Assembly (NCBI GenBank): GCA_020536535.1 | Contig: JAHLWZ010000791.1 | Span: 249,017 to 313,016 of the forward strand | Source of the DNA: Pelomyxa schiedti | Taxonomy: Eukaryota; Protista; Evosea | Length of the DNA: 64,000 nt | Direction: 5' to 3' | In this document: piece by piece, positions 28,853 to 36,400 of the stretch | Layout of the letters: the number at the start of each line of letters is the position of its first letter | Numbering within the stretch: the stretch's first letter is position 1 | Made by a program: the position numbers and the translations under genes | Notes under the pieces: model-generated | Told to the model about the DNA's origin: nothing | What the model saw: only the letters and a program-made list of their open reading frames with translations | Database searches by the model: none

Positions 28853-29338
28853 AGATCTACACCGACACAGGGCAAAGAAAATAATTCAGATATTGATCCC
28901 CTTTCCGCCATTCAAACACGTGCAATTGCAATCAACAAATGTCTCTGAGACTGACAAAGCCCAACGAGCGGCTGGCCAACTCACAGCATTCGCACCCAAC
29001 AACACCCCACTCTGAATACTGGATACCGTTGTAATGCCAGAGTCCAGATCTCCCTCGTTCCCAGAAAGTCGTTTCTGAAAAGCACGAAACCCCGAGGATG
29101 ACGGTTCGTTTTTCATAGCAACGCAACCGCCTTTGTCGTACAGCGACACCCAATCTAACTTCTTTTTCTTTTTATTGGTTCTGGTGCTGTTTGCTCTCTC
29201 GATTATTCACTCACAAAAAACACCCCCCAGTCCCCCGACAGCTTAGACGTCACCACCAACCGCGTGACATCTAGTACCGTCCTTAGGTGCATCACCTGTG
29301 CCCAGGCCCTATGTGCCTTCGAGGCTAACAATTCCACC

Positions 29339-32300
29339 ATGGTGGGGACGCCCCCTGCCCCCCTCCCTCGGCCCGCCTCCGGCGCCCCCTCCTCGAGTCG
29401 CGGGGGAAAGGCCGCGGTGCCCCTGCGGGGCTGTGTGCTGAGCTGCGTGGACCTGACCGCCGAGCGCGACTTCTTGGACAGGTTCGACCCGGCTGGTGCG
29501 TACATCATTGGCGACTGCAGGCTCCCTCAGGGCCTGACCGAGGACCAGCTTGTCGCCAAGGGTGCCATCGTCATCAGGCCGAGGCTGTCCACCGAGGAGG
29601 GATTCGATCCCATAAGGCAGGGGCTGTACACCGTGGAGGAGCTGAAAGCCGTCGACGCCAAGATGTACGCTTTCGTGAGGCGCAGGGATCACACGCAGCT
29701 TGACAGGCTGTGCGAGTACATCCACGACGGCCTGGTCCTCGACGCGCTCAACAAGGAGATAGAGAGACGCTCCATCGTGGGCATTATGGGAGGCCACTCC
29801 ATGACGCGGAATTCCGAGATCTACCGCGAGGTCGCTCGCCTGTGCCACCAACTTGCCAAGTTGGGATTCACAATCATCACCGGCGGGGGTCCCGGAGCCA
29901 TGGAAAGCGGGAATTTGGGCGCGTTCATGGCCGACTGGCCTGAATCTGACCTGGACTCCGCGCTCAAGGCCCTTTCGGACGCCGGAGACGAGAGCACCGA
30001 GGCCGCCGACGCCCTTTTGGCCAAGTACGGGAGGCCCGGCGGCGGCAAGTTGTCACTGGGCGTGCCAACTTGGCTGTACGGCCAGGAGCCCACCAACAGA
30101 TTTGCGTCGCTGCAGGCAAAGTTCGTCAGCAACGCCGTGAGGGAAGATATCCTGGTCACAATTTGCAACTGCGGCATCATCTTCACGGAAGGCAGCGCTG
30201 GCACGAGGACTGAAATCGCTCAGTACGCGGTGCCAAATTGCTACGCTTCTGAGAAGGATGGTGACACGTCGAAGCCGATGATTTTCTTCAAGAATGTATG
30301 GGTTGAAAATTCTGTTTACCAGTCCCTCTGTGCTGTAGCTCAAAGGGAAGATGAAGCAAAATCCAAACTGGATGGATATAGCAAACGCATTTATGTTCTA
30401 TCAGACCCTGCCGAGGTTGTGAAAGTGATCCAACACTTCCAAAAGGTAAGAAGTGCTGTGCCTGAACCATCACCAGCTCCAGTTGTTTCTGATGTTATGA
30501 CCCTGGAACAACAAGAAGAGAGTGCCAAGCAAATAGCTGCATATGCTGCTGTTGACTACTGGGTGACAAAGGATGGCATGACTGTAGGAATCGGTGGCGG
30601 GAGCACTATCAAATATGCTATTGCCAGAATATCAGATATATGTAAGTTAAATAATTGGAGGATAGTTTGTGTGCCTGGGTCTCTACAAACTCGAAAACTT
30701 CTATTGGACCACCATCTATTAGTAAGTGACTTGAAGACAACACCCTACGTCGATGTTGTTATCGATGGTGCGGATAGATGCGACCTCTACTTGAACCTGA
30801 TAAAGGGTAGAGGTGGATGCCTTCTACAAGAGAAAATCCTAGCATTCAGTACCGGTGCCTATGTGGTTATTGGACATTGGGAAAAAGATTGCGAGACCCT
30901 TTCTAGTGGTATAACAGGTCCATTTCCTGTACCTCTTGAAGCATCCCCTCTTGCTGTGGAGCGTATTATTCGCTCACTCCAGGAGCACTATGGTCCAATC
31001 AAAACAGAATTAAGGACAATCCCTCCTAGTGCAGATACCCTTCCAGATCACCGGGTCCCATTTGCTACAGACAATGCCAATTACATAATAGATGTCACCT
31101 TCACTGAGGAGCATTTACATAATCCCAAGAAGCTAGAGGCATCTTTGCATTTGATTCCAGGGGTGCTTGAGGTTGGGCTATTTACAAGTAATGTTACTAT
31201 GGCCTTCTTTGGAAAAAAGAACTATTTACCTGGGGAACGGCCCTTCTACACTCGTCGTAGAACAGAGGTAGGGTTGAATCCAAATGTTTCTCCTAGTCAA
31301 CAACATTCCGCTATTGAGGATGTTCTAAATCAAGTGAAAGCAATTTCTGCAACTAATGGTAAACCAGTTGTAGAGATAGACCTGGACATGTGTGGGCTTA
31401 CACCATATGAGCGCATTATATTTGGATTGAGGAAAGCCGGCGCAGACTGGGAAATTCCAGAATTTAGCACTGACCCAATGCTATATACAGGAGGAATTTT
31501 GCCAGGTCTTAGCCTCGGAGCTTGGAAATCATTCCTTGTTGAGATTTCTTTTGTAAGCGGCTTCTTTCCAGAGAAATTCTTGCTAATACGCTTATAGATC
31601 ACAAAAAATTACCCTGACCTTCCTTGGATTCCTACAAATGAGGAAGCAAGGTGGAAATCCAAACCCGAACCTGGGAGTAGTGTGTGGTCTTCCTTTTATA
31701 GTGCCTTCTGGAAGAATGACTTGATGGGACATGATATCCCCACATCCGGTTTGAGGGAGTTCATAAAAAAGGTTGAATACAATGGGGGAGTGATTGTCTT
31801 TTTGAGTTCTAGATGGAAAGATACACACCTCGCCCCAACACAGGTAGTTTTACATCAAATAGTAATGGGTAAAACTCCAACCTTACTCTTTGGAAATGCG
31901 GACCCTTTCACCACAACGGACTGGAAAAACAAAGTGGAGAAACAACAATTGATCAGAGAAAAAAATGGCACCCCTGTTGCCGTTTTTGATTCCGATGCGG
32001 ATTCCCTTTCACAAATCAATAAAGCTTGTGGAGGAAAATTAATTTGTGTTCAAGTTGCATTACCAGGATACTCTTGTAATAGAAATATCAGTAAAGCAGC
32101 AAGAAAAATTTCTACATTTGACTACAGTGAAGAAGCTCCGCACAGTGTTGGAACAGTCTTAAAGCAACCAATTCCTCAGCTGCCAGCACTTCTCCCCGTT
32201 GAACCATCAAGGCAGCCAGAACATCGCATCCGAATAGCCACATTCAACTGTGAGAACCTTTTCCTCAGATTTAAGTTCAAGACAGCAATGCCACATAACC

Positions 32301-33336
32301 GCAGGGATGGCGGCTGGTCAATGAACGATACCAACCTGAGCATCTTTGATGAAGTGGAGAAACGTCTAACAGCAAATTGCATCCGAGAAATAAACGCTGA
32401 TGTCATAGCACTAGAAGAAGTGGAAGACCTTGTTCTTCTTGATATGTACAACCGCGAGTATCTATCCAAAATGTACCCTCACCGGATTCTCATCCAAGGC
32501 AATGACCAGCGCTTCATCAATGTTGGAGTATTAAGCAAATATCCTTTCCAGAATGTAAGGACCCACAGAGCCGAGACGAATTCAGCGGGCTCTCCCCTGT
32601 TCTCTCGTGACTGCCTGGAAGTAGACGTAAGTGTGGAAGATAAGGTGCTCCACCTGCTTGTCAACCACTTCAAGTCCATGCTGGGTGGGCGAGCTGAGAC
32701 CCGCAACACCAGGCGCGACCAGGTCAACAGAGTCGTGCAGATAATAGAATCCGCTTATGGGAGCAATGTGGAGGGCAATGTTGTGGTTGTAGGCGACTTC
32801 AACGATTACTGTGCCGGCCCAACAGATAATGAGAGTGGTGTGACACCCCTTGTTCACCATCCCAGGTTGGAGAATGTGCTGGCCAGGGTGCCTCCAACCG
32901 AGGCCTGGACACACTACTTCAAGAAAGGGAGGGAATATCATCAGCTTGATTATCTACTGCCCTCAAGGTCTGCTTAGTTTTTCTGTTTTTTTTTTTTTCT
33001 TGTGGTTTTTCCTGTTTTTGCTTTTGTGGCTCGTGCTTTATTTTTGGATTTGGAAACCTGGCTCTCCTTCGAGATATAACACTGGCGATCTCTAATATTA
33101 TTAAACAGGGCACTGTCACAATCACCAGCGAACCGGGGCACGTTGCCGGTTGCATTCCGAAAGGGCGTCACAATATACGCATCAAGATACGACGGTCCTC
33201 GCTACTCCACACAGCCGTATGTGTTTTCTTTCATTGTTGTCCCGCCCGCAGACGTATCTCAACGACTTCACCAAAACACAGGAGGCAAGAGGCAAGTGAC
33301 CATTGTCCGTTATATATGGATCTTGTCCTCCTATAG
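29339..33336 (+). CDS. Four-domain fusion: LOG/PpnN-like nucleotide hydrolase, ribose-5-phosphate isomerase A, HAD-like domain, EEP nuclease/phosphatase (about 1,250 aa, about 3 introns)
   Basis: LOG: VGIMGGH...ITGGGPGAMESGNLGA...GSAGTRTE. RpiA: VGIGGGST, DVVIDGAD, NLIKGRGG, FATDNANYIID, IPGVLEVGLF. HAD: VEIDLDMC, FLSSR, VFDSD. EEP: IATFNCENLF, DVIALEEVE, NHFKS, VGDFND, LDYLL, ASDHCP. The single in-frame TAG at 31595 lies in a GT..AG intron (31553-31597, 45 nt). Confidence 0.85.
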
Positions 33337-33493: not shown

Positions 33494-36400
33494 ATGCAGG
33501 GTGCGCCGGTGGGAGATGGTGGCGGTGTTCCGGGTGGTGTCGCAGTTACGTCGTTGAGGAAGAGGAAGGAACCAGCGCCACCTGACGACCAGCTAGAAAT
33601 AATGCCACTCGGTGCTGGTGTGGCTGTTGAACTGTGAATCTCAAGCTATTTGACCGGTTTTGTTTTTTTTTTTTGGCTAGGCAATGAGGTTGGCAGGTCA
33701 TGTGTGTTGCTGAAATACAAAGGCAAATCTGTGCTGGTACGGAATAGCCACTCGCGACTGAATATGCTGCTTTAATCACCATCTATACAGTTCGACTGTG
33801 GTGTCCACCCTGCTTTCAGTGGGGAAAGTTCACTACCATTTTTTGATGCCATTGACCCTGGAACTGTGGACCTTGTACTCATTAGCCAGTCTGCCCTCCC
33901 TTTTCTTCCTGCTATGGAGTCTTGTGTAACCTTAATGACAGTTTCCACTTGGATCACTGTGCTGCACTGCCTTATTTTCTTGAAAAAACCACATTTAGAG
34001 GGCGTGCATATATGACATATCCAACTAATTCCATATACAAACTCCTCCTGTCAGATTTTGTAAGAAAAAGGTACAACAGTGATTCCTATCCCTTCAATCT
34101 AATTTTCAAAAGTAATTCCCCAGCTGATGAAATGTTATATACAGAACAAGATCTTCTTCATAGCATGGAGAGGATAGAGAGGATAGACTACCATGAAGTA
34201 CGATTAATTTGTTTTTAAAATATATAGCATCCCTCCTGCTCTTATCCTCCTGCAGGAATTGGAGCACAATGGAATAAAATTCAAATGCTTAAATGCTGGG
34301 CATGTTCTTGGAGCAGCCATGTTCCTTGTAGAAATTGCGGGAGTGAGGGTATGCATTCAAACACTGGGACTCACCTCAAGAAAAAACCTAATAAATATTC
34401 ACAAAAAATATAATCAATCTTTACAACACAAAACAAACACAACACAACACAGCATTACATGAACCTCTGAACGAATTTGGGCAAAAGGTTCTATATACTG
34501 GTGACTTTTCCAGACAAGAGGATAGGCATCTCATGGGTGCTGAAGCACCTTCTGGTAATTTCGTGAATGAAGTTTTTCTTAATAACCTTTTCCACAGTTT
34601 CTGTTGATGTGCTCATTGTTGAGTCCACATACGGTGTTCAAACACATCAACCCAGAGAAGAAAGAGAAAAACTTTTCACAGGTTTGCATTGCTTTCTTAC
34701 TTGAGTTAATGCCAGGAAAGGCTACGTACATGAGATTGTCACAAGAGGAGGAAGATGCTTAATTCCTGTTTTTGCCTTGGGAAGAGCACAAGAACTCCTT
34801 CTTATTTTAGGTAAGAAAATGCATTAATTCTCCTCCGAATACTTTCTGATGAAATCCTAGATGAGTTCTGGGATGAACACCCTGAGCTTCATTCCATCCC
34901 AGTGTATTTTGCTTCTACTTTGGCAAAGAAATGCATGACTTTCTATCAAGCCTTTGTAAATATGATGAACGAGGTTCAAAACTTGCACTCTGTGATTGCC
35001 TTTTTGTTAAAAAAAAAAAAAAGCACATCAGAAATAAGTTTGCTATCTCAAATCCCTTCCGGTTCAAATATGTCGCAGAGCTTGACAATGAAGTTTTTGA
35101 TGATAATAACCCTTGTGTAGTGATGGCCAGGTTGCACAAATCCTTCTTATTTCTCGTACTAACTTTTTTTCAGCCCTGGCATGTTACAGGCAATCAATAT
35201 TTCTTTTCTTTTTCATCCGTTGACATTTTTCAAGAATGGACTTTCCAGAACTTTGTTTGAGAAATGGTGTTCAGATAAAAAGTCTGGGGTGATTCTGCCG
35301 GGGTACTGCGTGGAGGGTACGCTCGCTAAGGTGTGCTTCTTTCTAAGTAGGTCAAATGTAACCTTATGGCAGAAACTCTTGACAGGCGAACCCAAGACAA
35401 TCCCAAGGTACATTTACTTGTAATTTCATTTACTGGTTTATTTAATTTCTGTGGCACAGTGGCACTCATCCAGGAGTGGAGTTGGCCCGAAATTGCTCTA
35501 TAAAATATATTTCATTTTCAGCACACTCTGATTTCAAACAAACGTCGGAATTCATTGATATTCTCTTCCCATCTTATGTGGTTAGTTGAGAAACTCATTG
35601 TGACGTAAATAACAACACTAGGTACTTGTGCACGGAGATGGCAATGAAATGGGTCGCCTTAAGCAAGCCTTAACTCAAATTTACGAGAAAAAGAGCATGG
35701 AAGTCTTAATGCCCGGAAATACACAAGTGGTTTCCTTGCAATTCCATGGAGATAAAATTGCCAAAGTATTTTACCTATTTCTATCTCTTTCTCTAAACTC
35801 TTTTACAGGCAATTGGCAAGTTGGCCTCAGAACCTCCCTCACAGCGAAGACGATTGTCTGGAGTAATTGTTCGTAAGGACTTTATGCATAGACTACTGTA
35901 TGGTCAGAGTTGTGATAATGCCTTCTAAGATTCTACAAGGGACCCATCAGAACTGCACACTTATACACAACTACGAACCAATCAAGTTATGCAGCATATG
36001 ACTATTCCTTTTCACAGTGACTTGGGCCCACTTGTTCAGTGCTTACAGCAAGTATTCAGTGATACCACAGGATACGATGCCTCAAATTCCGCTTGTGTTG
36101 TGCGGGTAGGGATTCTCCTTACTATTACATCTTTAAACTAAAATAGGTACATGGTGGTGCTGTAGAATTGAGCATGCAATCTCCTGGTGTCTTGCTACTA
36201 GACTGGAACTCAACACCACTTTCCGATATGATATCAGACGCCATTATCTCAATTGTAATGAATATAGAAATGAATCCTGTTGCAGCATCCGCACTTCTTC
36301 CAGGTTCCTACACAATTTTCCGTCAAATCACTAACAAAATCAAACAGCAGTGAAACCGGAGGCCAGTGCACCACCTGCCAAACCCAAAGTGGATGCCTCT

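Follow-up and report, generated by a model that had tools for sequence, protein, structure and literature searches.

In archaea, the AMP and pentose-bisphosphate pathways channel ribose from nucleotides into central carbon metabolism by means of a phosphorylase, ribose-1,5-bisphosphate isomerase and either RuBisCO or an aldolase. A different set of enzymes, which includes the LOG, RpiA and EEP families absent from those archaeal routes, together with a HAD phosphatase, is joined in a single protein encoded within a 64,000-nucleotide stretch of the genome of Pelomyxa schiedti, an anaerobic amoeba (contig JAHLWZ010000791.1, positions 249,017 to 313,016 of the forward strand; here called the window). 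All four enzyme families are known. The nearest described relatives of the parts are the type II LOGs (TT1465, those of C. glutamicum and S. coelicolor, and Neisseria YgdH) and E. coli PpnN; stand-alone RpiA of ~220 residues; the C1-capped HAD enzymes CbbY (xylulose-1,5-bisphosphate phosphatase) and phosphoglycolate phosphatases, with the class B/C acid phosphatases (AphA); and, in the EEP superfamily, ExeM/NucH (PF19580), Nocturnin, LINE-1 endonuclease and APE1. On balance, we think it likely that the Pelomyxa protein is a fused catabolic chain, ordered LOG-RpiA-HAD-EEP, and a duplicate of a five-domain gene that came from a prokaryotic gene cluster. The fusion and the cluster point to an apparently unstudied route from nucleotides to pentose phosphate, and we found no paper in the literature on either.

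The locus is predicted to be one intron-bearing gene, at 29098-33336, for a four-domain enzyme of 1286 residues. Its product, the NCBI Pelomyxa schiedti protein P0001, was retrieved as a 100% match in a database search with a first-exon query, and mapping it onto the window located five exons separated by four introns, all of the form GT...AG (Table 1). The spliced coding sequence of 3861 nt translates into a protein identical to P0001, which bears out the single polypeptide with removable introns proposed in a preliminary description of this DNA; profiles or AlphaFold2 models support all four families. The deposited name is only 'ribose 5-phosphate isomerase, type A', so the claim in that description that no protein of such architecture had been described holds for published studies, of which we found none, but not for the databases. 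Its proposed start at 29339 is directly preceded by an alternative in-frame ATG at 29336, whereas the deposited model begins at 29098 with the 6-nt exon, which the spliced sequence needs to match P0001. Unspliced, the plus strand reads as open reading frames of 777 codons (29264-31597) and 431 codons (31682-32977) that share a frame; the frame of the last exon differs from that of the other three large exons.

The TAG at 31595 is in frame with the upstream coding sequence, and the model could therefore be an artefact in which a LOG-RpiA gene stopping at this codon was joined to a separate HAD/EEP gene downstream. We give this almost no credence. The TAG falls inside a 45-nt stretch bounded by canonical GT-AG, and a break there would divide the HAD domain between its motifs I and II. 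The Pelomyxa paralogue and four orthologues, three of them from transcriptomes, are colinear across the site without an insertion, and the spliced HAD domain gives a confident fold prediction, with a predicted local distance difference test (pLDDT) score of 96-97 over the junction. In the three de novo transcriptome orthologues (Mastigella, Cavostelium and Rhynchopus), the whole chain is a single complete open reading frame.

Table 1 Gene structure and domains of P0001 in the window, eukaryotic relatives, and instances of the bacterial Y/Z domain (nt, nucleotides; aa, amino acids)
Feature	Location or protein	Strand	Length	Details
Exon 1	29098..29103	+	6 nt	Annotated; ATG ACG
Intron 1	29104..29230	+	127 nt	GTTCGT...CCCCAG
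Exon 2	29231..31552	+		LOG, RpiA and start of HAD; HAD motif I DLDMC at 31379
Intron 2	31553..31597	+	45 nt	In frame; GTAAGC...TTATAG; includes TAG 31595-31597
Exon 3	31598..32967	+		Remainder of HAD, linker, majority of EEP
Intron 3	32968..33108	+	141 nt	GTCTGC...AAACAG
Exon 4	33109..33216	+		
Intron 4	33217..33281	+	65 nt	GTATGT...ACACAG
Exon 5 (last)	33282..33336	+		EEP catalytic SDH motif; TAG stop 33334-33336
LOG-type domain (SLOG cluster 4)	29432..30544	+	aa 70-440	GGGPGAME at 29882, AVRED at 30134, GSAGTRTE at 30191
RpiA domain	30587..31324	+	aa 455-700	GIGGGST, DGAD, KGRGGCLLQEK, Lys of HWEK
HAD phosphatase domain, C1-capped	31367..32194	+	aa 715-975	Split by the 45-nt intron
EEP domain	32252..33333	+	aa 995-1286	Across two introns; FNCEN, ALEEVE, NHFKS, GDFND, QLDYL, SDHCP
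P. schiedti, second gene	P0043		1903 aa	Ndom-LOG-RpiA-HAD-EEP
Mastigella eilhardi	P0042 / P0187		1976 / 2030 aa	Ndom-LOG-RpiA-HAD-EEP; transcriptome
Cavostelium apophysatum	P0189		2001 aa	Ndom-LOG-RpiA-HAD-EEP; transcriptome
Rhynchopus euleeides (diplonemid)	P0045		2138 aa	Ndom-LOG-RpiA-HAD-EEP; transcriptome
Mastigamoeba balamuthi	P0048		672 aa	LOG-RpiA
Y/Z domain (alignment A8)	L024:3213-4313			
Y/Z domain (alignment A8)	L025:11767-12957			
Y/Z domain (alignment A8)	L019:11875-13134			
Y/Z domain (alignment A8)	L014:11838-12740			
Y/Z domain (alignment A8)	L027:12706-13632			

The first domain has the Rossmann fold and the GGGPGxMEAxN and GxGTxxE motifs common to type II LOGs and PpnN, but differs from them in an insertion of ~75 residues between the two motifs, which bears PTW.YG.EP...AKF.SNAVRED, and in an N-terminal extension of ~100 residues. 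Similarity to existing family models is limited: the PF18306 (LDcluster4) score is borderline (26.8-28.7 bits against a cutoff of 26.3) and that of TIGR00730 is 21.8 bits against 96.35. In the PDB, a type II LOG is matched at E=2.4e-16 by a profile built from 24 sequences of the family. The AlphaFold2 model (pLDDT 87.9) has TT1465, YgdH, type II LOG and PpnN as its top Foldseek matches (probability 1.00, E=1.8e-8), with target TM-scores of 0.73-0.78 against LOG-type structures. The GGGPGAME, AVRED and GSAGTRTE motifs align with the nucleotide-binding and catalytic motifs of LOGs, and P0001 retains all 47 of the 47 conserved positions of the family; the Archamoebae proteins carry Glu in place of the Pro of PGG. 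The predicted structure thus identifies the domain as having the LOG fold and belonging to the LOG/SLOG superfamily (PF18306, PF03641), and its sequence places it in the SLOG cluster 4 clade. Streptomyces has stand-alone proteins of this clade; one of these, P0010, is 38% identical, in keeping with the bacterial-like subtype noted earlier. A literature search found no assayed member of the clade. The preliminary description had labelled the domain LOG/PpnN, of which the LOG half stands; identity with PpnN itself was rejected, given a NF038390 score of 21.8 bits against a cutoff of 450 over only ~75 matched residues, PpnN target TM-scores of 0.36-0.40 and the lack of the PpnN flanking domains.

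The second domain is unambiguously a true RpiA. It matches PF06026 at 142 bits (cutoff 26, E=1.5e-41) and passes the equivalog cutoff of TIGR00021 (171.1 bits against 126.4), with NF001924 slightly under its threshold (168 against 192). Solved RpiA structures are matched down to E=1.7e-31, and the phosphate loop, DGAD, KG.GG....EK and the later Lys of the active site align with them. The difference from known RpiA lies in the setting, a 1286-residue multi-enzyme protein rather than a stand-alone one.

The third domain has a HAD fold topped by a helical cap, and its motifs I-IV follow one another as in CbbY, the phosphoglycolate phosphatases and AphA, although identity to these is only 9-16%. 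Its AlphaFold2 model (pLDDT 87.3) gave 120 Foldseek matches at E<=0.001; all 50 of those listed are HAD-superfamily structures, led by CbbY (a sugar-bisphosphate phosphatase), phosphoglycolate phosphatases and AphA. Scores for the subfamily IIIB acid phosphatase model PF03767 (16.5-18.1 bits against a cutoff of 27) lie below the gathering score, as does the match to PF25109 below its own cutoff. Motifs I-IV are conserved over 20 relatives, and the window copy has the invariant residues D719, D721, Ser in motif II, Lys in motif III and the first Asp of motif IV. That copy nevertheless retains only 31 of 38 conserved positions and has, among other changes, Thr replaced by Cys in motif I and DD by DS in motif IV, whereas the long paralogue P0043 keeps 36 of 36; the domain is therefore drifting in the window copy. 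In our reading of HAD cap types, a helical cap marks a small-molecule phosphatase and not a polynucleotide-end phosphatase. The cap, together with the fusion of this domain to RpiA in bacteria, makes a pentose phosphate or bisphosphate its probable substrate.

The C-terminal domain scores above threshold with both PF19580 (50.9-53.7 bits, cutoff 27) and PF03372 (34-35 bits, cutoff 24.5). It carries all the conserved metal-binding and catalytic residues of the EEP superfamily but belongs to a distinct subfamily of ~310 residues, made up mostly of stand-alone bacterial proteins with ~45% identity. Of the subfamily positions that are at least 90% conserved, 36 of 37 are retained, including the catalytic N/E, H, D.N, D and DH. 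A PDB sequence search with the P0001 domain alone gave no match, and the family profile matched EEP chains at E=2.3e-14. We regard the domain as a putative phosphodiesterase or nuclease. The motifs of LOG, RpiA, HAD and EEP are all present and aligned, so the earlier view that the four catalytic motif sets are intact is confirmed.

We searched for relatives of the fusion among 1.84 billion representative proteins. A longer form, Ndom-LOG-RpiA-HAD-EEP, occurs in a second P. schiedti gene and in Mastigella, Cavostelium and Rhynchopus (Table 1), and a third, broken Pelomyxa copy (P0002) was also found. The architecture is thus not unique to this locus, and we found no characterization of it. Ndom, an N-terminal domain of ~400-600 residues, is weakly similar to the TIM barrel of 4-HFC-P synthase (E=0.0085-0.039), and its profile had no sequence match in the PDB. 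The window copy pairs with P0043 (99/98 support) in a tree built from the RpiA-HAD region, and Mastigella branches outside this pair; tblastn detected no Ndom or Ndom remnant upstream within the window. The window gene therefore appears to be a Pelomyxa-specific duplicate of the five-domain gene that has lost the barrel-like Ndom. This replaces the earlier suggestion of assembly from laterally acquired parts: the architecture was not put together in Pelomyxa but apparently inherited from the longer protein, whose make-up has its counterparts in clusters and a four-domain gene of bacteria. Nor does a proposed tie to anaerobic life hold up, as Cavostelium and the diplonemid Rhynchopus, both aerobic organisms, also carry the architecture. 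In the same tree, unrooted and thinly sampled, Rhynchopus lies beside the bacterial fusion and not with the amoebae, which hints at more than one transfer into eukaryotes. The full domain order is also seen across five open reading frames of a contig in the European Nucleotide Archive (ctg9094_6x_l, L004:4515-10808); frameshifts in a low-coverage long-read assembly, or else introns, probably account for the breaks.

Prokaryotic genomes hold the same parts, mostly as separate genes. In Peribacillus butanolivorans, EEP, Ndom, LOG and an RpiA-HAD fusion (WP_116821981.1) are neighbouring genes, with Ndom 38% identical to its eukaryotic counterparts (E~1e-90) and RpiA-HAD 34-37% identical (E~1e-84). 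This cluster lies ~4 kb from a phage-integrase gene (L001:13696-14346) and several small unannotated genes, and may thus be part of a mobile island. Among genomes sampled at one per species, 40 Ndom loci were located over many phyla; in high-GC loci, where naive gene calling fails, genes were read as stop-to-stop open reading frames with profile matches. The partners recur with Ndom in varied states of fusion in a Bacillota metagenome-assembled genome (MAG; L007), Clostridium, a Thaumarchaeota MAG, Sphingomonas, Massilia/Duganella, Rhizobium, Sulfidibacter, Acidobacteria, Planctomycetes and Verrucomicrobia. The EEP genes adjacent to Ndom in the Bacillota and Thaumarchaeota MAGs fall in the Pelomyxa EEP subfamily (34-37% identity). 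One contig encodes a single bacterial Ndom-LOG-RpiA-HAD gene (P0047), and a Desulfobacter contig ends within an Ndom-LOG gene.

Domain families and order in the Peribacillus-type cluster and in P0047 are those of the eukaryotic fusion, with 32-38% identity for RpiA-HAD and Ndom, although the LOG subtype differs in some bacteria and the window copy, unlike the cluster, has no Ndom. The five-domain eukaryotic gene thus appears to be a prokaryotic gene cluster in fused form, and the clusters and the bacterial four-domain gene imply that the parts were linked, and partly fused, before they reached eukaryotes. Bacterial clusters often carry an additional domain, Y/Z, that the eukaryotic proteins lack. 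Y/Z comprises ~300 residues and occurs stand-alone, fused before LOG or fused after HAD. Its many invariant His, Asp and Glu residues (for example, H..HD..D.H..HH..H) make it look like a metal-dependent enzyme; its profile had no PDB sequence match and corresponds to no Pfam family. In cyanobacteria and Rhizobium, Ndom itself follows an N-terminal phosphate/phosphonate-binding domain of the PhnD/SsuA type (PF12974; P0214, P0216-P0218, P0220 and others; L009, L010, L011, L018 and L026), a hint that Ndom handles a phosph(on)ate ligand.

With three of the four domains being hydrolases, the chain is probably catabolic. In the scheme we favour, the EEP domain would cut phosphodiester-linked nucleotides, either oligonucleotides or a dinucleotide-type metabolite, to 5'-nucleotides; LOG would hydrolyse the N-glycosidic bond to yield base and ribose-5-phosphate; and RpiA would convert the latter to ribulose-5-phosphate, which could enter the non-oxidative pentose phosphate pathway. 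HAD may handle a small sugar phosphate or bisphosphate beside the RpiA step. We assume that P0001, in which no signal peptide is apparent by eye, is cytosolic. Other fusions of the same LOG clade, which arose independently, support such a nucleotide-to-pentose chain. Members are joined to an RNB (RNase II/R) domain (P0008, 954 residues), to EEP (P0058, L005:2640-4946, adjoining a glucose-6-phosphate isomerase (PGI) gene) and to the pyrimidine-binding and C-terminal domains of transketolase (P0023-P0030, 626-628 residues). Known RNB enzymes release 5'-nucleoside monophosphates. The nucleic-acid-to-pentose logic of the preliminary description is therefore coherent and gains strength from these fusions, although its EEP nuclease and its HAD role are predictions.

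Several observations weigh against this scheme. The HAD phosphatase has no obvious job in the proposed chain, and seven of its 38 conserved positions are changed in the window copy. The EEP profile also matches Nocturnin and sphingomyelinase, and not all enzymes of the EEP family are nucleases, some being phosphatases and others lipases; the ExeM/NucH model NF033681 scores 40.6 bits against a cutoff of 300, and neither a signal peptide nor the accessory domains of those enzymes are apparent in P0001. The ancestral system has two further conserved parts, Ndom and the His-rich Y/Z, so that something other than simple nucleic-acid salvage may be the real pathway. A broader proposal, which we hold only tentatively and consider rather unlikely, is that a widespread, undescribed prokaryotic pathway, built from the TIM-like barrel of Ndom, Y/Z, LOG, RpiA, HAD and EEP, has its fused, shortened eukaryotic version in the window gene. 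Ribose-5-phosphate from nucleotides would pass through ribulose-5-phosphate into new chemistry, such as a cleavage or a furanone-type product made by the barrel.

Other functional readings draw on the same evidence. The enzymes could make up a pathway dedicated to a special metabolite, ribosyl or phosph(on)ate in nature, instead of to bulk nucleic acid, with EEP and HAD acting on small phosphoesters, Ndom and Y/Z doing the defining chemistry and the window copy serving as a side branch. Ndom and Y/Z, which have no sequence match to solved structures, recur with LOG, RpiA, HAD and EEP across phyla, and the PhnD-type fusions of Ndom in cyanobacteria and Rhizobium, its weak resemblance to 4-HFC-P synthase, the capped, small-molecule type of the HAD domain and the match of the EEP profile to Nocturnin all lean the same way. 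The independent fusions of the LOG clade to RNB and to central pentose-phosphate enzymes fit general nucleotide breakdown, however, and the window copy keeps LOG, RpiA and EEP under strong constraint even though its Ndom is gone; a special metabolite is, in our judgement, a serious rival but a minority possibility. That P0001 is mainly a housekeeping ribose-5-phosphate isomerase, with LOG as a nucleotide-sensing regulatory module, would agree with its deposited name and with the use of SLOG domains as ligand sensors in ThsA and TRPM channels. The complete conservation of its LOG positions, including GGGPGAME, R-E-D and GT..E, makes this improbable, as does the conservation of two additional hydrolase domains.

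More improbable still, to our minds, is descent from a bacterial conflict or defence island that provides immunity through nucleotide depletion and a nuclease effector. The first descriptions of SLOG families came from nucleotide-centred conflict systems, and the Peribacillus cluster has an integrase gene nearby, but PADLOC returned no significant match for the proteins of that cluster or for P0001, the system has its links with RpiA, transketolase and PGI, and it is stably kept in free-living eukaryotes.

For the favoured nucleotide-to-pentose chain, the fusions give a direct, testable substrate prediction for SLOG cluster 4, a large LOG clade, and the clusters flag two conserved domains, Ndom and Y/Z, without known relatives. 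The locus also offers a clear case in which a whole bacterial cluster appears to have entered eukaryotes as one gene that was then duplicated and trimmed. The window copy is the shortened paralogue, its HAD domain is drifting, and each functional step assigned to the protein is a prediction.

Within the P0001 coding sequence, the GC content at third codon positions is 0.79-0.85 over the first 300 codons and 0.29-0.62 in later 300-nt blocks. The next gene downstream (33497-35300, plus strand) is intron-rich and, by eye, encodes a metallo-beta-lactamase of the CPSF73/Ints11 type, with a motif in an open reading frame at 33922-34218. It too is GC-rich at its start (from ~33497), so the gradient may be a general feature of the 5' ends of genes in this genome.

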